DNA of 64,000 nt from Takakia lepidozioides (Eukaryota; Plantae; Bryophyta), in assembly GCA_030704615.1 (NCBI GenBank), contig CM060732.1:30814001-30878000 (forward strand). Reading direction: 5' to 3'. The notes under the pieces were generated by a model, which was given only the letters and a program-made list of their open reading frames with translations, had not been told where the DNA came from and made no database searches. This document shows positions 20,376 through 57,059 of this stretch, one piece after another. The stretch's first letter is position 1, and each line of letters opens with the position of its first letter. The position numbers were made by a program, and so were the translations under genes.

Positions 20376-21914
20376 GTTCAATGAGAAGCATTGGGGTACC
20401 ACCCCCTCTTTCTTGAAATAAAAAAACAAAAGCAAAAACAAATACAAGTGTGATGGCTGTCAGCCTGTCCCTATGACTGTGGAGGTGCTGAGCACACTTG
20501 GGATAGCGAGGCCCGAAGATGGTCCCTCTCCCCCGCGAGATCCGAGCTGCACGGGCTTCCGATTCCTAGACCCCGTACAGACGAGATGCTTGTTCAAGAC
20601 CCAACTTCCGAATGGATGGCCTGTGCTTCGTCAAGGTGTGAAGGCGGCAGAGGCTCCTCGTCTAATAAGGCAGTCTCAGGGACAATCCTGCTGAAGGCCA
20701 TGTCGTCTTCATTTCTGTAGATGGTCGGAAAGACTTTAGATTATATGGTTACGCTGTGGAGCTTGCAAGTGTTGGCTACAAGGCCTTCCCAACTTGCAGG
20801 AGAAACGAAGGAAGGTAAGGAGATTTAACTCTCTGCCTGTTTTCTGGGGCCTCTAAACTGTGTACGGAGCACTTCCATGGTATTCTGGACAAAATTCCCG
20901 AAAGGACACCCAGTTTGACCGAAAGTGTTCATCTTAGGGTCGGAGTTGACAAATGTGGGTGTGTTTCCCACCCTTGTAGTCCTTTCACTGTCTCTTTCCG
21001 TAACTCTAAGATATCTTGAAACTTGAGAGATGGCTTGCTTGCAACCATTCGGGGAGATTACCTGCATGTTGAGAGCCATGACAATTCGAGGAACAAACAG
21101 TTTGAGTTCCCTCCTTGAATTGAAGTGACAGTGAGGGGTGTACGTGTTTGACCCTTCTTGCCAAATTTGGCTGTGATTACACGGGAACCAATTGTGCCGT
21201 TTCTACCAGGTAGGGTCTGGAAACTTTGCCTGCCGACGCTGTAGTTCTCGCGCGCAGCCAACCACAATCCACTTGAAGGAAATTGAATGTTGGTTTAAGG
21301 GCTGTTATGGAGATCCTGCTGCAAAATACTTGAAAGTCCTCCATCGTTAGCCACCAATGCCCACAATTTCCAAAAATGTGACGAATGTGGCGGTGATTGG
21401 CCGATCATTGGTTCTGTTCTTGAGAAAGGGCACATTGATTTTTGAAAAGCCTATCATTTCACAAGAGTCAGAATTACGAGCTTGTAAATAACTATGTGTC
21501 AAGGGTGTTGGCATGTAGGTCAAGGAACAAGCATAGAGCAGCTCTGGCAGGATTTATCCTCAGACCCTTCAGAGTGATGGGAGAACAGGTTTGAGAAGGT
21601 GATGCTATCGCCCTGTAGGATGTGAAGAGCTTGTTGAAGGATCTTGTGACCTCATCTGGCATGCTGACAGTATGTTGAGTGCTTGACGACAAAACAGCAT
21701 TTTGTTGTGAAAAGGCAAACCGATGCATACCGCCGATCTCAGTATGCCGTTCTTGCACATTTGCAGGGAACAGACTCTTAAGTTGTTCAAGGTTGTTCCA
21801 AACTATTGGAAAGATGCCTGGATCTTTGTGGGGTATACCGTCATCCATGGGAGACTCTGGTTGAAGCTATGACTGGTTGGCTACCCCTGCTGGTATTTAC
21901 AAGCCACTTCAAGT

Positions 21915-24870
21915 TCATGAGACTTTGGACACAAGCTCACGATGGAGGTCCTGTGGATTGAGTTGGTCAACTCCTCCTTGGGTGAAAGCAGAGCTAGCTG
22001 CCATAATACAAGGTGCGGGACAATCTGTGATGCTACAGACTATGGTCACAGGACAAACACCTGTGAAACACGGGCTGTGGCAGAATGTGAGTATCATTCA
22101 CAATCAGCCTGCCTTGAACGGTGGACATAGCAATTACGAGTTCCTTCAGCAGGTTCCCACATCTGTAGTTTTATTATTTTTGTTTGTTTTTGTGTGGGGG
22201 ACGCTGGGAATGAGCTCTGGCATAACAACTTGCAACAGTATTATCCAAAACTACACTTTTGGAAACTGGCGAAGTTATCACGTGCCTGTAGTTTTTGCGC
22301 CCAGGTGGGGGCAATGGTTTTTCTCAGATCCTTCACGGTGGTGGGACAAGACGATCTGATAGAGTAGGCCATCTTCATTTATGACAGGAAAGAGTCGGAG
22401 GGCTTCATGTCAATTAGACGGATCCAGTGGTCTTAGGTTCAAAGTTACACCTGGTTATTGGATGCAACACATTGTAGCTGACCCAGCCCTGGAAAGGGAG
22501 CCACTCTCACCTAGCAGCTTTAAGCCCTTGGGGAAGGATTGGGCAGTCGTGGCACATTGCCCAGGTTACAGCCGGCAGAAGTCTTCACCTTCCATTGGAA
22601 GATGACAGCCCTAGGGGGTGAACAGACATGCAAAATTACACTGGTTTTGGCATGGGCCCACCCTTTTTTCTTTGAATGCGATTGTGTCTCCGTCCAAGTA
22701 AGCTTTGCTTTGTCTCAAAAACCAGCAATTCTTGCTATGAATAGGTTGCGCTTTTCATGTCAGCAAGGCATGAAGGTAGGTTGCTCAAGGTTGTTCCCTG
22801 CTATTCAAGAGATGGAGCTTCTTTGGTTGTAGCCTGGTGTATGCAATGTGGGGATTGAAGGTATGACTGCTCCTATGGGGTGGTTACACAGAAAAGTCCG
22901 AGATCGCCACATGTCAGACATGAGTGGACAAGGGAGGCCCCGTGGATTAAGGGTTTGTTGAACCCTCCTTCAGTAAAAGCAGAGCTTATTGCAATCAGAC
23001 AAGGTCAAGCACAGTCTGGTGATAATCCAGAATATTGTCAAAGGATAGAATCTGGGCAAGCACAGGCTGTGGACAAACTTGAGTATCACCCAAAATCGGC
23101 ATGGCTTGAAGGACCGACAGTGGGAGTCAACAGTACCTCTTCTCACCCTTGCGGGGATGTGAGGATACTATGCAAGGAAGGACGTTTGAAAGAGGCACTG
23201 CACATTTTGAACAAACGAGGCATTCGTGCAGATACGAATACTTATGTTTGTGTCTTGCAGGCTTGCATCAAGATGAAAGGCCTATTAGAGGGAAAACAGG
23301 TGCATGCGCACATTATCCAAAGTGGATACATACCGAACACCTTTCTTCTGAACACCCTCATCAACATGTATGCCAAGTGTGGGAGCATGGTTGAGGCACA
23401 TAAAGTGTTTGACAAGATTCCTGAGCGAGATGTGTTTACGTGGAATGTAATGATAGGAGGATATGCCAAGCATGGGTGTGATAGGGAGGCGTTCCAGATG
23501 TATGATCTAATGCAACGGCAAGTGGTGATGCCCAACATGGTTACATTCACTTGTGTTCTCAATGCATGTGCCAGCCTGGGAATCCTGGAAAAGGGCAAAG
23601 AGGTCCACGCTGACATCATTAGAAGTACAATTGTGCAAGATGTTATTCTGCAGAATGCTCTTGTCAACATGTATGCGAAATGTGGGAGTATGAAGGATGC
23701 TTGCCAAGTGTTCAACAAGATGGCCCAACGAGATGTGGTCTCTTGGAACGCCATGACCACTGGATATACTCAGCATGGTTGTGGTAGGGAGGCTTTTGAG
23801 ATCTATGAGCACATGCAACAGGAAGGGGTGATGCCTAACAGGGTCACATTCACTTGTGTTCTCAAAGCATGTGCCAGCCTAGGTGCACTGGAAAGTGGCA
23901 GAAAGGTGCATAGGGACATAATCAAAGCTGGGATTTCACTAGATATTATTCTTGAGAATGCCCTCATCAACATGTATGCCGATTGCGGGAGTGTGAAGGA
24001 AGCGCAACAAGTGTTCAGCAGTATGGCTCAACACGATGTTGTTTCATGGAGTGCGATGATAGCAGGATATGCTGAGCACGAATGTGGTAGGGAGGCTTTC
24101 GAGACCTATGAGCAAATGATAGTGGAAGGGGTGACTCCCAATGAGGTCACGTTCATTTCCTTACTCAATGTGTGTTCCAGCCTGGCATCCCTGGAAAAGG
24201 GCATAGAGGTCCATGCTGCCATTATCAAGGCTGGGATTGTGCCAAATGCCATACTGGAGACTGCCCTGGTGGACATGTACTGCAAAGGTGGGAGCATGAA
24301 GAATGCCCGGGGAGTATTCAACGGTATGGCTAAACGTGATCTAGTGTCATGGAATGCGATGATTCGTGGATATGCTCAACATGGATGTGGTAGGGAGGTT
24401 CTCCAACTATTCGAAAAAATGCAATGGGAAGGTTTGAAGCCAAACAATGCAACTTTTTTATGTCTTCTTTCTGCATGCAGCCATGTAGGCCTAGTGGATG
24501 AAGGCCAGCACTACTTCAAAGCCATGAGGCATCATCATGGCCTCACTCCTACACTGGAACATTTTGGCTGCATGGTGGACCTTCTTGGCCGTGCTGGGCA
24601 CTTGGATGAGGCAGAGGACTTCATTAACAGAATGTCAATTGAACCAGGTGCTTATGTGTGGGGGGCCTTGCTTGGTGCCTGCAGAATTCATGGCAATGTG
24701 GAGATCGCAGAGCATGCGGCAAAATGCCTTCTCAACTGTGATCCAGAGCATGCTTCCACTTATTTGCTGATCTAAAACTTGTTTTGTGGTAGCTGGTAGG
24801 TAAGATGATAAGGCAAAGGTAAAAAAATGGAGGGCAGCTATGTCAAAAAGGAGCAGGGCACAACTGCATT
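21915..24870 (+). pseudogene. PLS-class PPR gene (ORF 22880-24775) truncated in E2, with no DYW domain; degenerate PDF-motif exons upstream
   Basis: P-L-S triplets, then L2-S2-E1; premature TAA at TYLLI*, followed by a frameshifted remnant (AGR*DDKAKV..KKEQG); upstream DFGHKLTMEVLWIE/PPWVKAEL (21921-21995), FFSDPSRWWDK (22318-22350), KSPRSPHVRHEWTREAPWI (22892-). Confidence 0.85.
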
Positions 24871-36361: not shown

Positions 36362-38113
36362 TCAAGCTCTTCGGCTGTATAATTGATTCTGTGGCCCCAA
36401 CTTCCTTTTCTCCATCGTCTTGAGGTAAAAGCCTATGAGGTTGGCATAAGTCCGGTTATTCAAATCCACCGCTTCCATGTTCAAAACAAGATTCTCACAA
36501 GCCACATGAAAATTCCCCTTCCCAAATCCCTCAAAAACCAACTGGTCTGTGGCAACTTCGGCAACAAGATGAAGTGTGCGCATCTCTGCCAACGCATCAG
36601 GAAGCTTTGTCTTTAACCTGCCAGCCAGGAAAGAGTCTACAACAGCACCATACGTTACTAGGTCAGGAGAAACCCCGACTGCTTGCATCTCTAGCACGGC
36701 AACCCGAAGGTCCCAAAACCATTGCATTTGGGAGAATGCCAGCACCATAATGTTGTAAGTGGTTATATCAGGTGTGAACCCTGCCTCCTTCATGTTATTG
36801 AACTGTCCCACCAGGTTATCCATGGAGAAATTTGCAGCATAGGACAGAAGAAGTGCATTCCACAGAAAATTTCCCATTGTGGGCCTTCTAAGCCCCACCG
36901 ACCGCACGAACTCACCCAACTGGAAAAAATAACTGCTCCTAACATAAGCCAGTGCCATTGCTCTCACAGTTGTTTGTCGAGCAATGTATCGATATTCCAG
37001 TAGAAGGCGATAATGCTTCTCCATCTCCTTCACAGACCCAGTTCCAGCGTATGCTCGGACCACAGCATTGAGGCACGTGGGGTCAGGGTCCCACCCTTCT
37101 ACAATCAGTTCTCTTAAAGCTTTCTGCATCCTTCCAAACAGGCCCCCCTTTGCGTATGCTTGTATCAGGGTACTGTAAGTGCATACATCTAGTGGAATAC
37201 CAACCGTTTTCATATTATTGAATACACGCCACATCTCATCATACAGGCCCCTCTCTCCGTATGCATGAATAAGCCCAGTGTAGGTAACTGTGTTAGGCTT
37301 CGCATCCCCAGACATAATCATCTCTTTGAGCACTTGCTCAGCTTGCTCAAAAAGACCACATCCAGCATAACCTTGCAGAAGACATGTGTAGGAAGCCACC
37401 CCTGGTCGAACACCAGAATCTCTCATTTCATCAAACAGTTGTTGAGCTAGCTCTGGCATGCGTGCCATCCCAAGCATGCTAATGAACTTAGTATAATGCT
37501 GCTCCCTTGATCGGTAACCCTCTTGCACCCTCCACCATTGAAATACCTTGAGTTCACTCGGCACAGATATGAGCTCAAGTCAGGTTCTGGGAACAAGGTT
37601 ATCATTTGACAATGGCAACTTCAAATTCTACCACTTCCATAACAGCCAAATTCCTAGATGTTCCTCCCAGCAACTGTTCCAAAACAAGGGCAGTGGAGCT
37701 TTTCATTTGGAGGGGTAAGAAGGGTACGCAAGGTTCACAGATCCACGTATCTCGCAAACTACTGCATGAAATGCGGCATCTAAAACGGCACTGTGCAAGG
37801 AGCTTCCTGTACAGCAGCAATTTGACTGCAATCGACGATTCAACTCCCCACAGTCCCATTCCCTATGAAGATCCAACAGGAGAATGGCCCAAAATATAGC
37901 AAGATCAATTACTACCTCCAAAGCATCTGCAATTCGACCATGGACGTTGAGAAAGTCAACGACTGACCAGAACTCAGGTGGGCTCCAAACTGGCATGCCC
38001 TCCAAAATTTCGATTGGGCTTTTCCCCATCCAGAGTTGCTTCACTGCGTGTGCCCTCTTATCACGCCCCGAGACGTTGTCTATGTCATCCTCATCGGAAT
38101 CTGTCTCCCACAC
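36362..38113 (-). CDS. P-class PPR protein (exons ~37915-38113 and 36362-37546); 5' exon probably further upstream (transit-peptide-like ORF 40288-40617)
   Basis: Tandem 35-aa P motifs (ASYTCLLQGYAGCG, VTYTGLIHAYGERG, CTYSTLIQAYAKGG, LWNALLLSYAANF); GT-AG junction LE|VFQWWR. Confidence 0.85.
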
Positions 38114-42651: not shown

Positions 42652-45600
42652 ACATCATGGTCAATACTCTCAGGAAATGGTGGATGATCTGAGTAGCTAC
42701 ACAGATCAATGAATGAAGCAAGAAACTCGCATCTTTCCAAAAAAAAAAATCCTTTCACCAGTAATCCCCACAAGAACAAATCCCATCTTCAAAGTGGTGA
42801 AAGCGGTTAGCGTCCCGTACAACAATTGCTCGGCCAACAATCTTTGAGATGAATTTGGTGGAGGTGTGGCAGTCACCACACACTCGAAGATTCTTAATGA
42901 GACGGAGAGGCGTCCTAGGGGTCGTGCTGATCAGCCCAAAACCAATGGCCAGCTTCTCACTGTGGTGGCAAAGAGAACATTCCTTTTCCTCCTCCCCCAC
43001 ATCATGCAATACAAAGCGCGTGTCAGGCACATACCCCGCCTCCTTCATCTGCCCAGACAATCTTCTCAGCTCAGCATGGATTTCCTTCATTCTGGGATGC
43101 AACTTGTCATCTACAACAAAGGTGTGCACCCTGTTGCCAACCTCAATGCAGCAGCGACCTGGCTCCTTTCTAACCCCTCTGACCTTCATCATTCTTCTCA
43201 CCTTTGCAGTATCATCCCACCTGCCAGCTGCGGCATAGATGTTTGAAAGCAACACATAAGTCGCGGCATCCTGTTCATCCCACTTGAGGATAGATGTTGC
43301 TGCACGTTCAGCCATCTCCACATTGCCATGGATTCTGCAGGCACCAAGCAAGGCCTTCCACACCACAACATCTGGATTGATTGGCATCTTATTAATCAGA
43401 TCCACTGCCTCATCCAGTTGTCCCGCACGTCCAAGAAGGTCCACCATACAGCCAAAGTGCTTTACTGTCGGAGTGACACCATGATCTTGACTCAGGGAAT
43501 CAAAGTAGCGTCTTCCTTCATTCAGTAGGCCAGTGTGGCTGCATGCAGAGAGAACACATATAAAGGTGACACTGTCCGGCTTCAAGCCGTTCTTTTGCAT
43601 TCCTTCAAATAGTTGCAGGACCTCCCTATGACAACCATGCTGGGCATATCCTGCCATCATTGCACTCCATGACACCAAATCTCGTTCAGCCATACTGTCG
43701 AACACTCCCTTCGCAGCCTCCATGCACCCACATTTGGCATACATGTCCACCAGGGCAGTGTTCAGAATGACATCGGGTACAATTCCAGCTTTGACGATGT
43801 CACCATGGACCTCTTTGCCCTTTTCCAGGGCTGCCAGGCTTGCACACGCATTGCAAACGCACACAAACGTGATGTGGTTGGGCTTCACCCCTTCCCCCAT
43901 CATTTCCTCATAGGTTTCCAAAGCCTCCATCCCGCGACCATGCTGGGCATATCCTGCGATCATTGCGTTCCACGACACCACATTTCGTTCAGCCATATTG
44001 TCGAACACTGCCTTCGCATCCTCCATGCACCCACATTTGGCATACATGTCCACCAGGGCAGTGTTCAGAATGACATCGGGTACAATTCTAGCTTTGATGA
44101 TGTCACCATGGACCTCTTTGCCCTTTTCCAGGGCTGCCAGGCTTGCACACGCATTGCAAACAGAAACAAACGTGATGTGGTCGGGCTTCACCCCTTCCAC
44201 CATCATTTGCTCATAGGTCTCCAAAGCCTCCATCCCGCGCCCTTGCTGTGCATATCCTGCAATCATCGCACTCCACGACACCAAATCTCGTTCAGCCATA
44301 CTGTCGAACACTGCCTTCGCATCCTGGATGCACCCACATTTTGCATACATGTCCACGAGGGTATTGTTCAGAATCACATCTGGTAAAATTCCAGCTTTAG
44401 CGATGCAACCATGCACCTCTTTGCCCTTTTCCAGGGCTGCCAGGCTTGCACACGCACTGCAAACAGACACAAACGTGATGTGGTCGGGCTTCACCCCTTC
44501 CCCCATCATTTCCTCATAGGTCTCCAAAGCCTCAATCCCACGCCCCTGCTGTGCATACCCTGCAAGCATCGCGTTCCACGACACCACATTTCGGTCAGCC
44601 ATATTGGTGAACACTGCCTTCGCATCCTCAATGCTCCCACATTTGGCATACATGTCCACCAGGGCATTGTTCAGAATGACATGGGGTACAATTCCAGCTC
44701 TGACAATGTCACCATGGACCTCTTTGCCCTTTTCCAGAGCTGCCAGGCTTGCACACGCATTGCAAACGCACACAAACGTGATGTGGTTGGGCTTCACCCC
44801 TTCCCCCATCATTTGCTCATAGGTCTCCAAAGCCTCCACCCCATGTCCCTGCTGTGCATACCCTGCAATCATCGCGCTCCACGACACCACATCTCGTTCA
44901 GCCATATTGTTGAAAACTGCCTTCGCATCCTTAATGCACCCACATTTGGCATACATGTCCACCAGGGCAGTGTTCAGAATGACATCTGGTACAATTCCAG
45001 CTTTGATGATGTCACCATGGACCTCTTTCCCCTTTTCCAGGTCTCCCAGACTTGCACACGCATTGCAGACACAAACAAACGTGATGCGGTTGGGCTTCAC
45101 CCCTTCGCGCATCATTTGCTCATAGGTCTCCAAAGCATTCATACCACACCCATGCTTGGTAAATCCTGCCAACATTATATTCCACGTGATCAAAGATCGT
45201 TGAGGCATTCTGTTGAACACTTGGTGAGCATCCATGATGCTCCCACACTTAACATACATGTTGACAAGGGTGTTGAGTAGAAAAACATTTGGCGTGAATC
45301 CACTTTGGATAATGTGAGTGTGCACCTGCTTTCCAGCTTCCAGGCCTTTCATCTTGATGCACTTATGCAAGAGACAGACATACGTATCTGAATCTGCTGA
45401 AATGCCCCCTTGGTTTAAAGTCTGTAGAGCCTCTTTCAGTCTGCCTGCCTCACAAAGCATCTTCACATGTCCAGAAGTGCCAGAAGAGGCATCGTGGACT
45501 CCCTCTCTTGATTCTCTTCCAGAAGCTGTGGTCATGGTTGAGGTGCCTGATTTTATCAACTGTGCCACTGCAGCTGCTGCCTTTAGTTGACCATCTACCC

Positions 45601-47311
45601 ATGCAGGTTTCTTGTAGCTATTGATCCACAGGGAATCATAGGTAATCTTGTGCTTGAAATCTGGCCCTCTTGGATGAATCTGGACCCACAATCTATCCCT
45701 GCTCCTTCAGCTATCCATGCCTCTGCACAAATCATGCATACATCCTTGCCTTGCTGCTAGCAGCTGACAATGACAGCCTAGAATTGTTCCAGAAAACACC
45801 CCAACCCTACTTATCACACTAGTACCTATGCTGACTTGCGTCTGCTTCCAACAGGCATTCACCTTTTTGCCTCGATTGTTCCACCATTGACTGGGATCGG
45901 AAACGTATTCATTCCAGAGCTTCTCCTCGTCTCTGTTATCTGTTTTTCGACTTTCCTGTTGCCACATTGGCAGTAACATGTCAAAATCACTCCAAAACCA
46001 CCATAGATCCACGAACGAGCTAACTTGCAAAATTCAACATGAACATTTAGGGACGACTCTGATAACGGGAAAAACAGGCTGTGTTGAAGAAGGTGCTTTC
46101 ATTAGCAGTGCCTGTGCCGCAGCCGCTGCTGTTTCCAGTTAACCATCTACCCACACAGATTTCTGGTAGCTATTGATCCACAGGGAATCAGAAGTAATCT
46201 TGTCTTTGAAATCCGGCCCTCTATCCCTGGTCCTTCAGCTATCCCTGCCTGTGTACAGATCATGAATACATCCTCAGCCTTGCTGCTAGCAGCTGACACT
46301 GACGCCGTGAAGTTCTTCCAGCAAACACCCAACCCTACTTATTACAGTAGTTCCAATTCTGAATTGCATCTGCTTCTCGCTGTAGTCCAACAGGCATTCA
46401 CCTTTTTGTCTCCATTGTCCCACCATTGACTGGGGTCGGAAAAGTGTTCATTCCAAAGCTTCCCCTCATTTCTGTTATCTGTTTTTGGATACTTTCCTGC
46501 TACCACATCGGCAGTAACTTGTGAAATTCACTCCAAACCACCACAGATCCACCCAACGAACTAACTTACACAATTCAATATGCATCTCAGGGGTCTGGTG
46601 AGAGGGCAAAACAGGCTGAAATAGGTCGAAGAAGAAGGTGCCCTCACCACATTGTCCTTGACCTTGTGTCATGACCCATGGAGGATTTGACCGACCATCA
46701 ACCCAAAAGGACCTCTTGTGTGTGCTGCTTGTGCCTGTAGTCAGGTAATGTCGAATTGGTCTGTGAGAACCACCACGGTGCAGCTGAGCAGGCAGAGGTT
46801 GAAACACGGCCTGCTAAGACCAAGCTGACTCTCCCAAGAACCTTGTAAACATCAGGAAGAATACCAAATCATGGTACTAACAGGAGCCAAGAGCCCACAT
46901 TTGCAGGATGGACAAACTTCTTCACATCGTACATTAAGAAAAAGCCACACCTTGCGATTGCGGTTGTCCCACCATCGTGAAGGATCTTTAAAAAAGTCAT
47001 GCCGGCTCTGCTCCGTGCTCCAAGGTAGTGGTTTGTGCTCGAAAATCCGACAGCATCAACATTCTGACAAGGTCCTTTACTGAGGGGTGCTAGTGAGCTT
47101 TCAACAACATTCATGCAAGTTGTTTTGGGCTCCATTGGGCTCTACACGACGAGGAACAACGAGCATGTCCAGACGTACACAGATGCTAACCCAGCTTATG
47201 CTTGCAGTCTGGAGATTGTAGAGTGGTCTCTGAAAACGACCATAGAGGGAGGAAGGCGCTGAGCAGCCAGAGTGTTTTACCCTGGGTCTCGGCATTTAAG
47301 TTTTTCTCACG
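42652..47311. repeat. Left arm of a ~4.65-kb inverted segmental duplication
   Basis: Reverse complement of 52411-57059; boundaries acatcatggtcaatactctc... and ...ggcatttaagtttttctcacg. Confidence 0.95.
42755..45955 (-). CDS. PDF-motif + PLS-PPR-E1-E2-DYW C-to-U editing factor, copy L (large exon 42755-45679; PDF exon 45863-45955; further PDF exons up to ~47230)
   Basis: 978-aa ORF with six L-S-P triplets at a 303-bp period, PG box KEPGRCCIEV, HSEKLA, NLRVCGDCH, ending HHFEDGICSCGDYW; N-terminal HPRGPDFKHKITYDSLWIN. Confidence 0.93.
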
Positions 47312-50300: not shown

Positions 50301-52410
50301 GAGATCTGGGACTAATTGACCCGGTCATGCAGATCTCCGCCTTGCTCTCTAAGTGGATACCAAGGTCGTTTTGTAATGGATCTAGCCCCTGGTGTACGCT
50401 ATTCAGAGCGCACATGGTGCACTCCCAACTCCCCATCCTGGGCACCATCCCTTAAATGGCTGTTTCATGGTGCTGGAAAGTCACGAACAGCTGGATCTGC
50501 TGCCTGGAACTCTACATAGGAGGCATGGAAGTCCATTCGTCCCCATTTGTCTCAAAGAAGAGCTGCCTGCTTTGAAGAGGCCATTCGCCAACCCTTATTT
50601 GGCAATCCCAACTTGGGTTGTGAACATTTGGCTGCTCTCAATAAGAAGTGGGCCACTTGGGAGGCAAGAGGTCTTTCGCACATTGCCAATATCTGAGAAA
50701 ATGGTCAGTTTCTGGACCCTTCCCTCTTGTCCTCCATGCTTTCTGCTAATTCCATTAGGACCGGCTGGGAACAGATTAAATCAGGTGTTTCATTCGTACA
50801 ACCCTTGTTACTTGGGGGCCCCTGTACTATCAATGATCTGCCTGTTTGGTTCGGATGCTCAGAGGGCAACAGACTCGTGGCCCTCCTGGCGGTCTTGTCC
50901 TCACAGACGCACTGGGAAGGTCTCCTTTTCAGGCCTTCCTCTAATATTGGGAGACTCTCCTTCATTGGAAATGGGGAATTGCTTCATGACCTAGTGGCCT
51001 CCTGGTGGCTTACAGAATTAGAGTCTTCGACACTCTAACAGGATCGACAGAACCCAGGCCTCCGCAGGGAGGAGAATAGTGTTGGGCTCAGAAATTTCAT
51101 ATGGTTCTTGAACCCGCTCAACAGATTCGACCCGGGCGAATGGTCATGGAAAGATGATAAAAAGACACCTCTGTTGGGTTACACTGTGAAACTGGTTACA
51201 TGATGCTTCTCGGTAAGGCAGACTTTGTAGAGAAGTGGAATCGCAAATGGAACTTCAATCTACAGTCACCTACTTGGAACTCGGTCTGGAAGGACATTTG
51301 GGCCAAGCGCCGCTCGGCAAAAACTAGTGCCTTTCTTTGGAAGCTGACGAATAGGATTCTGCCCATGGCCGTTTGTTTCCCTGATCGTGACCCTTCTTGC
51401 TTGGTTTGCAATTGCAATCTAAATGAGACTATTGAGCATGCCGTCACTGAATATTACCTGTCTGTAAGGATCTGGCAGCTTGTCACAGCCTTCCATGCGT
51501 GCTGGAAATCTGTGCCCCGTACAGCTGCACCCCTGCTGCTTCTAAACATGCACAATGGGTCTATTTTGGAGTAATTGTCCAATTTGCGCATGCCTCAGGG
51601 CACACACCCTTGGTCGATTTGGAAGGCTAGATGTAGTTTGTTATTTGAAGGGAGGTGCCCCAACATCAGATTAGTGCTTTATAAATTATTTGCTGATCTG
51701 ATGACTGAGAGGCGTAAGGCATGTGTGTCTTTGGAAACAGCTTCAACCAGGTGTAGCGACAGGAGGAGTCGTCAACTCTTCACGGACTTCGACCTCACCT
51801 GGGCCACGATCTCTCCTCGCGAATCACTTGGCATGATGCCATCCCCGGGGGAATGGCAAATCCCTTGCTGAGTCAGATGGACTCGACGTCAACTGGAAGC
51901 ATCTCAGTCTGCATGCTGCGAAATCTAAAGTCCACCTGAACTTCGGGCTCTAATCTATTTCTCTGATTTGAGGCACTTTGCTACTTAGTGCCCGTTTATC
52001 TGCTATGCAGCCATATAGTTAGGCTGTCAATATTGCTACTGCCTGGCTAGATTTGGTCCTATGGCGATCCCCCTCCCCGCCTTCTCTCGAACTTATTCTT
52101 AGATACTCCCGCTTCCCCCCCCCTTCCCTCTTAGTGCTGGGTGTTCCCATTCATCCAAAGGGGCCGGATTTCCAACACAAGATTACTTCTGATTCCATGT
52201 GGTTCTTTATAATAATTCCAGCACATTTGGTTCCATATGTGATCATGTGATACACTTTTACATCTCCTTGGAGGTTATTTTCCCTGCTCTATGTTCTGCT
52301 TTTTTGCCCCTTCGATAAAGTTCCGATGAGGGCCTCAGACCCCTGTTGCCCCAAAAAAAAAGAAAAAAGAAAAAGAACTTCATTCCCTTTATTTAAAAAA
52401 AAGAAAAGAA
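47312..52410 (+). mobile_element. LINE-derived spacer: a short LINE 3' end (47312-~47585) and an internally deleted L1-like LINE (~47603-52410; ORF1-like region, endonuclease, no RT core, zf-RVT, A-rich tail)
   Basis: SWNSRGLG, FQEHKL, INIYAPN, MGDFN, RLDRFY (49272-50191); WKDIWAKRRSAKTSAFLWKL..CLVC..ETIEH (51200-51574); A-rich tail 52353-52410; no DFEKAFD or YADD seen. Confidence 0.9.
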
Positions 52411-55400
52411 CGTGAGAAAAACTTAAATGCCACTCTGGCTGCTCAGCGCCTTCCTCCCTCTATGGTCGTTTCGAGAGAACACTCTACAATCGCCAGACTG
52501 CAAACATAAGCTGGGTTAGCATCTGTGTACGTCTGGACATGCTCGTTGTTCCTCGTCGTGTAGAGCCCAATGGAGCCCAAAACAACTTGCATGAATGTTG
52601 TCGAAAGCTCCCTAGCACCCCTCAGTAAAGGACCATGTCAACATGTTGATGCTGTCGGATTTTCGATCACAAACCTCTACCTTGGAGCACGGAGCAGAGC
52701 TGGCTTGAGTTTTTAAAAGATCCTTCACGATGGTGGGACAACCGCAATCGCAAGGTGTGGCTTTTTCTTAATGTACGATGTGAAGAAGTTTGTCCATCCT
52801 GCAAATGGCTCCTGTTAGTACCATGATTTGGTATTCTTCCTGATGTTTACAAGGTTCTTGGGAGAGTTAGCTTGGTCTTAGCAGGCCGTGTTTCAACCTC
52901 TGCCTGCTCAGCTGCACCGTGGTGGTTCTCACAGACCAATTCGACATTACCTGACTACAGGCACAAGCAGCACACACAAGAGGTCCTTTTGGGTTGATGG
53001 TCGGTCAAATCCTCCATGGGTCATGACACAAGGTCAAGGACAATGTGGTGAGGGCACCTTCTTCTTCGACCTATTTCAGCCTGTTTTGCCCTCTCACCAG
53101 ACCCCTGAGATGCATATTGAATTGTGTAAGTTAGTTCGTTGGGTGGATCTGTGGTGGTTTGGAGTGACTTTGACCAGTTACTGCCGATGTGGCAGCAGGG
53201 AAGTATCCACAAACAGATAACAGAGATGAGGAGAAGCTTTGGAATGAACACTTTTCCGACCCCAGTCAATGGTGGGACAATGGAGACAAAAAGGTGAATG
53301 CCTGTTGGACTACAGAGAGAAGCAGATGCAATTCAGAATTGGAACCACTGTAATAAGTAGGGTTCGGGTGTTTGCTGGAAGAACTTCACGCCGTGTCAGC
53401 TGCTAGCAGCAAGGCTGAGGATGTATTCATGATTTGTACTCAGGCAGGGATAGCTGAAGGACCAGGGATAGAGGTCCAGAAACATCCAAGAGGGCCGGAT
53501 TTCAAACACAAGATTACTTCTGATTCCCTATGGATCAATAGCTACAAGAAATCTGTGTGGGTAGATGGTCAACTGGAAACAACAGCGGCAGCAGCACAAC
53601 TGATAGAACAAGGCACTGCTAATGAAGGCACCTTCAACACATTTCAGCCTGTTTTTACCTGTTATCAGAGTCGTCCCTTTTCATGTTGAATTCTGCAAGT
53701 TAGCTCGTTCGTGGATCTATGGTGGTTTTGGAGTGATTTTGACATGTTACTGCCAATGTGGCAACAGGAAAGTGTCGGAAAACAGATAACAGAGACGAGG
53801 AGAAGCTCTGGAATGAATTCGTTTCCAATCCCAGTCAATGGTGGAACAATCGAGGCAAAAAGGTGAATGCCTGTTGGAAGCAGACGCAAGTCAGCACAGG
53901 AACTAGTGTGATAAGTAGGGTTGGGTGTTTGCTGGAACAATTCTAGGCTGTCATTGTCAGCTGCTAAGGATGTATGCATGATTTGTGCAGAGGCATGGAT
54001 AGCTGAAGGAGCAGGGATAGAGTGTGGGTCCAGGTACATCCAAGAGGGCCAGATTTCAAGCACAAGATTACCTATGATTCCCTGTGGATCAATAGCTACA
54101 AGAAACCTGCATGGGTAGATGGTCAACTACAGGCAGCAGCTGCAGCGGCACAGTTGATAAAATTAGGCACTTCAACCATAACCACAGCTTCTGGAAGAGG
54201 ATCAAGAGAGGGAGTCCACGATGCCTCTTCTGGCACTTCTGGGCATGTGAAGATGCTTTGTGAGGCAGGCAGACTGAAAGAGGCTCTACAGACTTTAAAC
54301 CAAGGGGGCATTTCAGCAGATTCAGATACGTATGTCTGTCTCTTGCATAAGTGCATCAAGATGAAAGGCCTGGAAGCTGGAAAGCAGGTGCACACTCACA
54401 TTATCCAAAGTGGATTCACGCCAAATGTTTTTCTACTCAACACCCTTGTCAACATGTACGTGAAGTGCGGGAGCATCATAGATGCTCACCAAGCGTTCAA
54501 CAGAATGCCTCAACGATCTTTGATCACGTGGAATATAATGTTGGCAGGATTTACCAAGCATGGGTGTGGTATGAATGCTTTGGAGACCTATGAGCAAATG
54601 ATGCGCGAAGGGGTGAAGCCCAACCGCATCACGTTTGTTTGTGTTTGCAATGCGTGTGCAAGCCTGGGAGCCCTGGAAAAGGGGAAAGAGGTCCATGGTG
54701 ACATCGTCAAAGCTGGAATTGTACCAGATGTCATTCTGAACACTGCCCTGGTGGACATGTATGCCAAATGTGGGTGCATTAAGGATGCAAAGGCAGTTTT
54801 GAACCATATGGCTGAACGAAATGTGGTGTCGTGGAGCGCGATGATTGCAGGGTATGCGCAGCAGGGACGTGGGGTAGAGGCTTTGGAGACCTATGAGCAA
54901 ATGATGGGGGAAGGGGTGAAGCCCAACCACATCACGTTTGTGTCCGTTTGCAATGCGTGTGCAAGCCTGGCAGCCCTGGAAAAGGGCAAAGAGGTCCATG
55001 GCAACATTGTCAGAGCTGGAATTGTACCCGATGTAATTCTGAACAATGCCCTCGTAGACATGTATGCCAAATGTGGGAGCATCGAGGATGCGAAGGCAGT
55101 GTTCACCAATATGGCTGACCGAAATGTGGTGTCGTGGAACGCGATGCTTGCAGGGTATGCACAGCAGGGGCGTGGGATGGAGGCTTTGGAGACCTATGAG
55201 CAAATGATGGTGGAAGGGGTGAAGCCCGACCACGTCACGTTTGTGTGTGTTTGCAGTGCGTGTGCAAGCCTGGCAGCCCTGGAAAAGGGCATAGAGGTGC
55301 ATGGTGGTATCACCAAAGCTGGAATTGTGCCAGATGTGATTCTGAACAATACCCTCGTGGACATGTATGCAAAATGTGGGAGCATCCAGGATGCGAAGGC

Positions 55401-57059
55401 AGTGTTCGACAGTATGGCTGAACGAGATTTGGTGTCGTGGAGTGCGATGATTGCAGGATATGCACAGCAAGGGCGCGGGATGGAGGCTTTGGAGACCTAT
55501 GAGCAAATGATGGGGGAAGGGGTGAAGCCCAACCACATCACGTTTGTTTCCGTTTGCAATGCGTGTGCAAGCCTGGCAGCCCTGGAAAAGGGCAAAGAGG
55601 TCAATTGTGACATCGTCAAAGCTGGAATTGTACCCGATGTCATTCTGAACACTGCCCTGGTGGACATGTATGCCAAATGTGGGTGCATGGAGGATGCGAA
55701 GGGAGTGTTCGACAGTATGGCTGAACGAGATTTGGTGTCGTGGAGTGTGATGATTGCAGGATATGCACAGCAAGGGCGCGGGATGAAGGCTTTGGAGACC
55801 TATGAGCAAATGATGGGGGAAGGGGTGAAGCCCAACCACATCACATTTGTTTGCGTTTGCAATGCGTGTGCAAGCCTGGCAGCCCTTGAAAAGGGCAAGG
55901 AGGTCCATGGTGACATCGTCAAAGCTGGAATTGTACCCGATGTCATTCTGAACACTGCCCTGGTGGACATGTATGCCAAATGTGGGTGCATTGAGGATGC
56001 GAAGGGAGTGTTCGACAATATGACTGAACGAAATGTGGTGTCGTGGAACTCAATGATCGCAGGATATGCCCAGCATGGTTGTCATAGGGATGTCCTGCAA
56101 CTATTTGAAGGAATGCAAAAGAACGGCTTGAAGCCGGACAGTGTCACCTTTATATGTGTTCTCTCTGCATGCAGCCACACTGGCCTACTGAATGAAGGAA
56201 GACGCTACTTTGATTCCCTGAGTCAAGATCATGGTGTCACTCCGACAGTAAAGCACTTTGGCTGTATGGTGGACCTTCTTGGACGTGCGGGACAACTGGA
56301 TGAGGCAGTGGATCTGATTAATAAGATGCCAATTAATCCAGATGTTGTGGTGTGGAAGGCCTTGCTTGGTGCCTGCAGAATCCATGGCAATGTGGAGATG
56401 GCTGAACGTGCAGCAACATCTATCCTCAAGTGGGATGAACAGGATGCCGCGACTTATGTGTTGCTTTCAAACATCTATGCTGCAGCTGGCAGGTGGGATG
56501 ATACTGCAAAGGTGAGAAGAATGATGAAGGTCAGAGGGGTTAGAAAGGAGCCAGGTCGCTGCTGCATTGAGGTTGGCAACAGGGTGCACACCTTTGTTGT
56601 AGATGACAAGTTGCATCCCAGAATGAAGGAAATCCATGCTGAGCTGAGAAGATTGTCTGGGCAGATGAAGGAGGCGGGGTATGTGCCTGACACGCGCTTT
56701 GTATTGCATGATGTGGGGGAGGAGGAAAAGGAATTTTCTCTTTGCCACCACAGTGAGAAGCTGGCCATTGGTTTTGGGCTGATCAGCACGCCCCCTAGGA
56801 CGCCTCTCCGTCTCATTAAGAATCTTCGAGTGTGTGGTGACTGCCACACCTCCACCAAATTCATCTCAAAGATTGTTGGCCGAGCAATTGTTGTACGGGA
56901 CGCTAACCGCTTTCACCACTTTGAAGATGGGATTTGTTCTTGTGGGGATTACTGGTGAAAGGATGTGTTTTTGGAAAGATGCGAGTTTCTTGCTTCATTC
57001 ATTGATCTGTGTAGCTATTCAGATCATCCACCATTTCCTGAGAGTATTGACCATGATGT
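52411..57059. repeat. Right arm of the inverted segmental duplication
   Basis: cgtgagaaaaacttaaatgcc... to ...gagagtattgaccatgatgt is the reverse complement of 42652-47311. Confidence 0.95.
52688..56958 (+). CDS. PDF-motif array + PLS-PPR-E1-E2-DYW C-to-U editing factor, copy R. Predicted exons ~52688-52754, ~52885-53032/53053, 53199-53293, 53480-~53627, 53768-53862, 54034-56958; start codon unresolved
   Basis: 978-aa ORF with intact HSEK..CGDCH..DYW; upstream exons bounded by AG and GT encode WLEFLKDPSRWWDNRNRK, EEKLWNEHFSDPSQWWDNGDKK|KHPRGPDFKHKITSDSLWINSYKKSVWV and EEKLWNEFVSNPSQWWNNRGKK|VHPRGPDFKHKITYDSLWINSYKKPAWV. Confidence 0.9.

Follow-up and report, generated by a model that had tools for sequence, protein, structure and literature searches.

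The locus described here lies in a 64,000-nucleotide stretch of Takakia lepidozioides DNA (hereafter, the window). We consider it likely to be a member of a nuclear gene family, found in seedless land plants, that encodes a PPR-E-DYW editing protein with a PDF motif before the first PPR, assembled from four exons and using a single PDF motif. The PDF-PPR-DYW architecture is a real gene family and not a chance adjacency. An inverted paralogue has it too, as do annotated proteins from Diphasiastrum, Sphagnum, Calypogeia and Adiantum.

An OSB-type PDF motif ahead of a PPR-E-DYW protein

An earlier note on this DNA had described a 978-aa open reading frame (ORF) with a PPR array and an intact DYW domain. 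Our analysis bears this out: the ORF is present at 54022-56958 (+) and encodes an intact PLS-PPR/E/E+/DYW protein. Pfam assigned PPR families to it, followed by an E motif at aa 788-850 (E = 4.7e-21), an E+ motif at aa 855-879 (E = 3e-4, under Pfam's cutoff) and a full-length DYW deaminase at aa 886-978 (profile positions 1-93 of 93, E = 7e-44), which is the order PPR array, E/E+, DYW. Alignment with relatives revealed that the deaminase zinc and catalytic signature (HxE ... CxxCH) is kept, as HSE (HSEK) and CxDCH (CGDCH), together with the terminal DYW. The DYW region deviates at the PG box, which reads PGRCC (W to C) where relatives have PGCSW or PGRTW, and at a GTP that has become RTP. A linker and the PLS-class PPR array occupy 54130..56382 (+), and within the array Tandem Repeats Finder detected a 303-bp repeat corresponding to a P-L-S triplet (54577-56075, +; 4.9 copies, 90% alike). 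The E, E+ and DYW cytidine deaminase regions and the stop codon follow at 56383..56958 (+). The sequence immediately before the linker (half B3, 54034..54129, +; E = 6e-10) is a second PDF half that keeps every invariant residue and passes into the PPR array within the same exon, so that the last PDF copy is indeed joined in frame to the PPR-DYW protein as had been proposed.

We built an OSB-only HMM from 16 PDF motifs in eight non-PPR proteins (named OSB3 proteins and gymnosperm or fern OSB-like proteins) and ran it against all 3024 stop-to-stop peptides of the window. Second (B) halves matched profile positions 22-53 with E values of 5e-10 to 7e-8, and first (A) halves matched positions 2-25 with E values of 6e-6 to 1e-4, a significant match to an OSB PDF profile. 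Furthermore, when 54034-54318 was compared exhaustively with 1.84 billion proteins in phmmer, 77 matches had E<=1e-3; nearly all of them ran through query residues 2-33, and named OSB3 proteins were included. These results confirm the proposed identity of the motif as an OSB-type PDF. Across 48 PDF motifs, PPR-linked ones included, ten columns are invariant; the signature residues (W, WWD.R..K, P-D-F-K, LW, P.WV) are found at the locus, and 53199-53293 together with 54034-54129 keeps nine of the ten columns, the exception being an R to G change at the WWDNR Arg. When 53768-53862 is paired with the B half instead, nine of ten columns are likewise kept, with a D to N exception. Either candidate first half thus departs once from the invariant columns.

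The PDF domain alone has a confident predicted fold (pLDDT 93.5), and no solved structure resembled the model (best Foldseek E 7.3; best VIA-align Z 2.9). Word-indexed protein searches with the N-terminus alone returned nothing, a result that reflects the limit for short motifs at the E-value scale of 5.8 billion sequences and not evidence of absence; relatives did emerge from the exhaustive search and from the full-ORF search. The PDF pieces match no Pfam model, and Pfam-based domain surveys would therefore miss the fusion. Pfam detected no SSB domain in the ORF or the upstream pieces, although it does show one in the OSB-like matches P0001, P0037 and P0097.

A survey for the fusion in other plants, as the note had suggested, was productive. 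The PDF motif is present in 29 of the best 120 relatives of the ORF. Full PDF+PPR+DYW proteins occur in the lycophyte Diphasiastrum complanatum (13), the liverwort Calypogeia fissa and the moss Sphagnum jensenii, where they are annotated as hypothetical proteins, and PDF+PPR proteins occur in the fern Adiantum. One 4755-nt contig from the Logan collection of public runs encodes three PDF motifs and a PPR array in a single uninterrupted ORF. An intron within the motif, in phase 0 and five residues before P-D-F, is common to the window, D. complanatum (L002, L006), Sphagnum (L005) and Ceratopteris L004, an OSB-like gene in which Pfam recognizes an SSB domain; the Sphagnum B half, too, passes directly into the PPR array. 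In a tree of 203 PDF motifs, the PPR-linked motifs cluster (3 changes versus 32.8 expected; 0 of 500 shuffles as low); built from 53 columns and including many near-copies, the tree is no proof that they arose once. Consistent with the note, we found no description of the PDF-PPR-DYW fusion, functional or otherwise, in the searchable literature.

Gene model and the state of this copy

The model most likely to be correct has four exons: 52570-52754, 52935-53047, 53199-53293 and 54034-56958. All three of its junctions, including the A|B junction within the PDF motif, are present in Logan contigs of public runs; the RNA status of these contigs is guessed, and most of them derive from paralogues, since they are only 90-99% alike. 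The exons were checked, searched and aligned singly and not as the joined product.

Exon 1 (52570..52754, +) begins with the ATG at 52570, three codons downstream of an in-frame stop, and ends in phase 2 at a GT donor. That it codes for a presequence is suggested by the open frame in the paralogue and by the need for an ATG; it showed no sequence similarity to D. complanatum N-termini. The junction between exons 1 and 2 is represented by the loose ends of three X1 contigs. Exon 2 (52935..53047, +) has an AG acceptor and a gtgagg donor, ends in phase 1 and would encode the rest of the presequence, including a relic second PDF half (..FWVDGRSNPPWV..). Its frame aligns with the half-PDF relic of D. 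complanatum proteins, the intron after it agrees in position and phase with that of D. complanatum L006, and the junction to exon 3 (53047 to 53196/53199, GT..AG) was found in public-run contigs. Exon 3 (half-exon A2, 53199..53293, +) encodes the first PDF half, with Gly for the WWDNR Arg, and ends in phase 0 at gtgaat. Three X1 and two X2 contigs contain the junction from 53293 to 54037 with ATT between, which matches the paralogue; at the corresponding positions, 54034-54036, this copy reads GTA. The phase-0 splice sites that had been read from the sequence are in place: the A halves end at 53293 and 53862 before gtgaat, and the B halves start at 53480 and 54034 after cag. Exon 3 and the start of exon 4 most likely code jointly for one complete PDF motif; alternatively, 53768-53862 may be spliced in instead of 53199-53293. 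Finally, the linker at the start of the 54130..56382 segment aligns with PDF-PPR-DYW proteins of D. complanatum.

The inverted paralogue lies at 42755..47135 (-) and is 95.5% identical to this copy over 4.66 kb. Its exons (-; 47135-46951, 46760-46648, 46496-46402 and 45679-42755) are open from the ATG to the DYW stop and encode ~1105 aa. Between the two copies, dN/dS of the ORFs is 0.435, and there is no indel in the 2.9-kb ORF versus 11 events in the 1.6 kb upstream, as would fit selection on the ORF after the copies separated. Among 40 listed family-wide variants, 20 side with the paralogue (copy B) against this copy (copy A).

An exon-by-exon frame check revealed that exon 1 of this copy holds an in-frame TAA at 52714-52716 (codon 49), the only stop that breaks the four-exon model here. 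The corresponding codon is an open TTA in the paralogue, and 52715 reads T in place of A (giving TTA) in almost all family contigs of public runs. Because of this nonsense codon, we suggest that this copy is probably a young pseudogene or, at best, makes an N-terminally truncated product. We also considered whether it is a working gene in which exon 1 is an untranslated leader, translation starts at Met 53021 in exon 2 or elsewhere, and the TAA is irrelevant. The 978-codon ORF carries no stop or indel, so that the TAA is the sole defect seen, and the 61-codon alternative frame would be open in the paralogue by chance in ~5% of cases, which would both fit a working gene. However, in D. complanatum relatives the whole counterpart of exon 2 is translated and is preceded by a long presequence, initiation at 53021 would leave no presequence, and the near-universal TTA, together with the variants that match copy B and not copy A, also argues against an irrelevant TAA. 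We regard a working gene as unlikely.

Duplicated half-exons and fossil modules

Between exons 3 and 4 lie two further half-exons. Half-exon B2 (53480..53575, +) is an intact-looking second PDF half (E = 1e-9 against the OSB-only profile) without a usable donor: the counterpart of the donor at 53048 has been lost (gtgagg to atgaag), and a donor scan found just weak GT sites after 53575. In the paralogue's copy, 19 nt spanning the acceptor are deleted and a TAA is present, and contig depth is low over 53480..53575. Half-exon A3 (53768..53862, +) is a duplicate first PDF half in which the invariant Asp is Asn; it has an alternative acceptor at 53786 and, in the paralogue, a 2-nt deletion at 53772, and a single weak contig junction starts from it. 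Modules 2 and 3 lie ~555-570 bp apart. Both extra half-exons are probably products of a ~570-bp local tandem duplication that are skipped in the transcript.

The note had instead proposed a tandem PDF array, with two or three complete modules (53199-53293 + 53480-, 53768-53862 + 54034-) all spliced in frame. In line with such an array, each of the four half-exons has an open frame at this locus and matches the profile as a PDF half, there is a weak phase-compatible GT at 53568, and some relatives have two or three PDF motifs (P0003, P0128, P0192). Having exon 3 and half-exon A3 together in one transcript, however, requires 53480-53575, whose donor is gone in both copies and which, in the paralogue, carries a disabling deletion and a stop while the ORF stays constrained. 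The exons and intron of the duplicated modules are moreover equally diverged (84-89% identical), which fits neutral decay, and contigs link 53293 straight to a 54034-type exon. An array spliced as a whole is thus very improbable, and the best-supported product of the locus is that of the four-exon model, with one full PDF motif and one fossil half-motif.

The degenerate modules that had been placed further upstream proved partly real. The region 52690-53047 stands, and the piece at 52490 (SPDCKHK) does not, as its match was not significant (E = 0.56). The first module is a frameshifted fossil PDF that is translated in another frame: its first half (52692-52754, E = 1.3e-5 against the OSB-only profile) overlaps exon 1 in a different frame, so that exons 1 and 2 would code for a presequence that carries the remains of an older PDF motif. 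As a candidate PDF motif in its own right, 52692-52754 joined to 52935- was rejected; its frame has no ATG, has an upstream stop and ends, in both copies, at the stop at 52995-52997. An isolated fragment of a second PDF half (52143..52205, +; E = 2e-4, OSB-only profile) lies upstream of the duplicated unit.

Proposed role and comparison with known systems

In plant organellar RNA editing, PPR-DYW proteins provide both specificity and catalysis, and they are in development as programmable RNA editors. Descriptions of them list a targeting peptide, a PPR array and E/DYW domains. Seedless land plants are not known to have the MORF/RIP helper proteins of seed plants. The PDF domain is otherwise known only as an ssDNA-binding module of genome-stability OSB proteins. 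Members of this family are probably PLS-class PPR-E-DYW organellar C-to-U editors with at least one OSB-type PDF mini-domain before the first PPR. The PPR array would recognize RNA on the upstream side of the C to be edited, which the DYW domain would deaminate. The PDF domain, which would be placed on the 5' side of the PPR footprint, may strengthen binding to single-stranded nucleic acid irrespective of sequence, either by clamping the RNA or by tethering the protein to nucleoid ssDNA. Tethering to the nucleoid and deamination of ssDNA are speculation. That a whole subfamily of PPR-DYW editing factors in seedless land plants uses a built-in PDF as a single-strand clamp or nucleoid tether, coupling editing to organellar DNA or transcription, is a tentative idea that we think is rather unlikely.

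The family adds to PPR-DYW proteins a domain that is predicted to fold confidently and is conserved across liverworts, mosses, lycophytes and ferns. Should the PDF domain help to bind RNA or hold the protein at the nucleoid, organellar DNA metabolism and RNA editing would be linked through it, and it would then be a new accessory module that could be added to designer PPR editors. The locus itself is more modest: it has a single PDF motif and a nonsense codon, and its intact twin lies nearby. The PDF motif of AtOSB1 has been reported to be sufficient to bind ssDNA (PMC6963530), and this is the only point in favor of a PDF that redirects the DYW deaminase to DNA as a programmed ssDNA deaminase; the PPR array and E/DYW domains are canonical for RNA editing and no datum in our analysis indicates a DNA substrate, making this highly improbable.

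Like OSB proteins, the locus has the ~50-residue PDF mini-domain with nine of ten invariant columns, which matches named OSB3 proteins significantly both by profile and by phmmer, and it shares the position and phase of the intra-motif intron with a fern OSB-like gene. It is not an OSB protein, because the OB/SSB-like domain N-terminal to the PDF is missing; the PDF is N-terminal to the PPR array here and C-terminal to the OB fold there, and its partners at the locus, where one motif is used, are an RNA-recognition array and a deaminase. The split-motif exon structure shared with fern OSB genes might suggest that the PDF half-exons are remnants of an independent OSB-type gene lying by chance upstream of an ordinary PPR-DYW gene, a barely credible reading that is contradicted by the missing SSB/OB domain upstream, by a last half-motif that shares exon and frame with the PPR array, by the same arrangement in the paralogue, moss, liverwort, lycophyte and fern, and by spliced junctions in public-run contigs.

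The locus resembles canonical PLS-class PPR-E-DYW editors, such as the DYW-type PPR proteins of Physcomitrium with editing activity in E. coli (PMC6397227), in its PLS array, E/E+ motifs, HSE, CxDCH and terminal DYW. It differs from canonical editors in having an extra, predicted folded domain that separates presequence and PPR array, a multi-exon 5' end and the PGRCC variant of the PG box. The same domain order is found in D. complanatum (for example P0233, P0244 and P0247), S. jensenii P0242 and C. fissa P0237. Identity between the locus and annotated PDF+PPR+DYW proteins is just 44-60%, and the nonsense codon sets the locus apart from them. The D. complanatum proteins share the half-PDF relic, the linker and two intron positions with it, but have an additional intron after the B half and a presequence without an intron. 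Finally, maize PPR4, as cited in PMC9459714, is a P-type PPR protein with an N-terminal RRM and a role in splicing. It is a precedent for joining a PPR array to an N-terminal module that can bind single-stranded nucleic acid (for the locus, by analogy with OSB proteins), and differs from the locus in that the added domain is an RRM, the PPR class is another and the process is splicing rather than editing.

OSB-type PDF half-motifs lead into a PPR-DYW open reading frame

We found a 978-aa ORF at 54022-56958 (+) in which Pfam recognizes a PLS-type PPR array and, C-terminal to it, an E motif (aa 788-850), an E+ motif (aa 855-879, scoring below the Pfam cutoff) and a DYW deaminase matched over its full length (aa 886-978, E 7e-44), confirming the intact DYW domain of the earlier note. 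Alignment with relatives revealed that HSE, CxDCH and the terminal DYW line up, and that the only deviations seen in the DYW region (56383-56958) are PGRCC in the PG box (vs PG(C/R)(S/T)W) and RTP (vs GTP), both of which are also found in an inverted paralogue (the twin). A 303-bp tandem repeat inside the PPR array (54577-56075; 4.9 copies, 90% alike), whose unit is one P-L-S triplet, is a recent internal duplication and would alter the RNA-recognition code.

Short open pieces 5' of the ORF resemble halves of a single motif. First (A) halves terminate at 52754, 53293 and 53862 with GT directly after each, and second (B) halves begin at 52935, 53480 and 54034 with AG directly before each. The last B half (54034) is the start of the large ORF, and the last module thus runs unbroken into the PPR array, as had been claimed. 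No Pfam model matched the upstream pieces, so we built a test from search results instead. Exhaustive phmmer with 54034-54318 against 1.84 billion representatives returned 77 matches at E<=1e-3, which align almost all via query residues 2-33, frequently more than once in a protein; cluster look-up named several of them OSB3 (Zingiber, Anthurium, Euphorbia peplus, Lupinus). When all 3024 window peptides were scored with a profile of 16 PDF motifs from eight non-PPR proteins (the OSB-only profile), B halves matched positions 22-53 (E 5e-10 to 7e-8) and A halves positions 2-25 (E 6e-6 to 1e-4). A and B halves thus cover complementary parts of a single motif, the split falling ~5 residues before P-D-F. 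These matches bear out the earlier assignment to the OSB-type PDF motif; a further piece proposed at 52490 was non-significant against the same profile.

Ten columns are invariant across 48 motifs, OSB-type and PPR-linked. AlphaFold2 on this alignment (model mff4b44498765, P0233:136-197) gave a compact helix, short strands and a helix (mean pLDDT 93.5), and the PDF motif is thus predicted to be an autonomous mini-domain. Foldseek and VIA-align found no solved structural relative of the model (best Z 2.9).

The PDF-PPR-DYW fusion in other plants

At the family level, the fusion is real. The best named relatives in a full-ORF search were from the lycophyte Diphasiastrum complanatum (55-60% identity), and the OSB-only profile detected a PDF motif in 29 of the 120 best relatives. 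Of the co-occurrence asked about earlier, complete PDF+PPR+DYW proteins were seen in D. complanatum (n = 13), in a liverwort, Calypogeia fissa (P0237), and in a moss, Sphagnum jensenii (P0242), and PDF+PPR proteins in the fern Adiantum (P0075, P0230). In one Logan contig of 4755 nt (P0003, L001), a single uninterrupted ORF spans a presequence, three PDF motifs and a PPR array. These proteins all carry hypothetical or generic PPR annotations. Consistent with the earlier remark that no description of the fusion was known, none was found in the literature searched, whose coverage was partial; one 2026 paper that surveys OSB genes and PDF copy number (PMC13393729) does not mention PPR, and another from 2026 that surveys domain fusions of editing factors kingdom-wide (PMC13386178) mentions neither OSB nor PDF.

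The locus has a phase-0 intron within the motif, five residues before P-D-F, as do two D. complanatum PDF-PPR genes (L002, L006). A Sphagnum gene (L005) has its motif intron at the same place and in the same phase, with the B half continuing directly into the PPR array as at the locus, and a Ceratopteris OSB-like gene with a Pfam SSB domain (L004) shares both place and phase; a Sinapis OSB gene (L003) lacks the intron. The shared intron is good evidence for a single origin of the PPR-linked and OSB-linked motifs. PPR-linked motifs group together in a tree of 203 motifs (3 changes vs 32.8 in shuffles), compatible with one origin, which motifs this short are unable to prove. The motif is not confined to OSB and PPR proteins: among P0043, P0006, P0002 and the P0036/P0047 clusters, a Coptis chinensis kinesin has three copies, a dinoflagellate protein (Effrenium voratum) nine and the snow alga Sanguina five, and the motif also occurs in small unnamed proteins (67-134 aa) on JGI/IMG metagenome contigs of up to 449 kb.

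Gene model and upstream half-exons

Logan contigs of three public runs, whose RNA status is a guess, were aligned to 51900-54580. Contig depth was nil 5' of 52440 and, in 53340-53429, ~100-fold below that of the adjacent exon bin. Contigs crossed from 52754 to 52935 (as loose ends), from 53047 to 53196 or 53199 (GT..AG), and from 53293 to 54037; the last junction has an intervening ATT, exactly the twin's bases where the locus has 54034-54036. Identities of 90-99% for most contigs mean that they stem from paralogues; they show that the family is spliced at these sites, be it in RNA itself or in RNA-derived retrocopies, and not that this copy is expressed. An A|B splice of the kind proposed earlier is seen in family contigs, from 53293 into the 54034-type exon (at 54037) rather than to 53480.

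The model that these junctions support has four plus-strand exons (52570-52754, 52935-53047, 53199-53293 and 54034-56958), which we checked one at a time and left unjoined; all introns are GT-AG, in phases 2, 1 and 0. In the twin (minus strand, 47135-42755) the model reads through without interruption from its ATG to the DYW stop codon (~1105 aa). The locus has one in-frame TAA (52714-52716), a codon that is TTA in the twin and in nearly every contig. An abundant 850-nt contig (X2, depth 519) shares the 5' leader and opening codons of exon 1 (52463-52589) up to its point of divergence at 52589; this stretch may derive from another gene or element.

The first module was rejected as a PDF motif in this model: its A half is read in another frame, and of its B half the tail alone (..FWVDGRSNPPWV..) remains in frame. 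The corresponding position in D. complanatum proteins likewise holds this half-motif relic, and the intron behind it agrees in phase. The half-exons 53480-53575 and 53768-53862 are parts of a ~570-bp tandem duplication in whose two units exons and intron have diverged alike (84-89% identity), as neutral decay predicts. The donor expected 3' of 53575 is atgaag in locus and twin, the remaining GT sites are weak, and the twin's 53480-53575 has lost its acceptor via a 19-nt deletion and gained a TAA. It is possible that 53768-53862 is used instead of 53199-53293; joint use of the two requires 53480-53575. Each candidate A half departs once from the otherwise invariant columns (R->G or D->N), and the predicted product has one complete PDF motif whichever is used. 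Of the tandem modules claimed in front of the PPR array, the ~570-bp duplication stands, with its half-exons open, but an array spliced into the product is not supported, given the lost donor and the twin's broken 53480-53575; what looked like an upstream array consists of a fossil and a duplication.

The inverted twin and a proposed role for the PDF domain

The locus (52431-57059, +) and twin (47274-42652, -) are 95.5% identical and form a head-to-head PDF-PPR-DYW pair, with a reverse-transcriptase zinc-finger remnant (zf-RVT, 51200-51571) in the ~5-kb spacer. Between the copies, the ORF has dN/dS 0.435 (dS 0.056) and no indels in 2.9 kb vs 11 events in 1.6 kb upstream; the PPR-DYW part has therefore been under constraint since duplication. 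The exon 1 nonsense codon is the sole disabling change seen in this copy, which suggests either recent loss or an N-terminally truncated product. The E/DYW end is much less diverged than the PPR array (dS 0.008 vs 0.07), suggesting recent gene conversion at the 3' end. PPR genes and relics cluster in the window: a third, decayed PDF-PPR locus (21900-24775, +) has an A-type PDF half (~22300-22350, +) followed by stops and a 631-aa PPR and partial E ORF (22880-24772, +) whose start weakly matches the B half (E 0.2), and a 400-aa PPR fragment ORF lies at 36365-37564 (-).

Taken together, the sequence comparisons partly support the earlier reading: the fusion is real, the array at the locus is not supported, and the function is a proposal. 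Nothing here supports the idea that the PDF domain makes DYW act on DNA as a deamination substrate. In the working we propose, the PPR array would bind RNA upstream of a target C, which the DYW domain would deaminate. The PDF domain is immediately N-terminal to the first PPR motif, in a PDF-PPR fusion conserved across bryophytes, lycophytes and ferns; it would lie at the 5' edge of the PPR footprint and may add sequence-independent single-strand affinity or anchor the editor to nucleoid ssDNA. For AtOSB1, the PDF motif is reported to suffice for ssDNA binding (PMC6963530). A preprint on rice reports that WHY1, another organellar ssDNA/RNA-binding protein, is linked to editing cofactors (10.1101/2024.08.28.610128).
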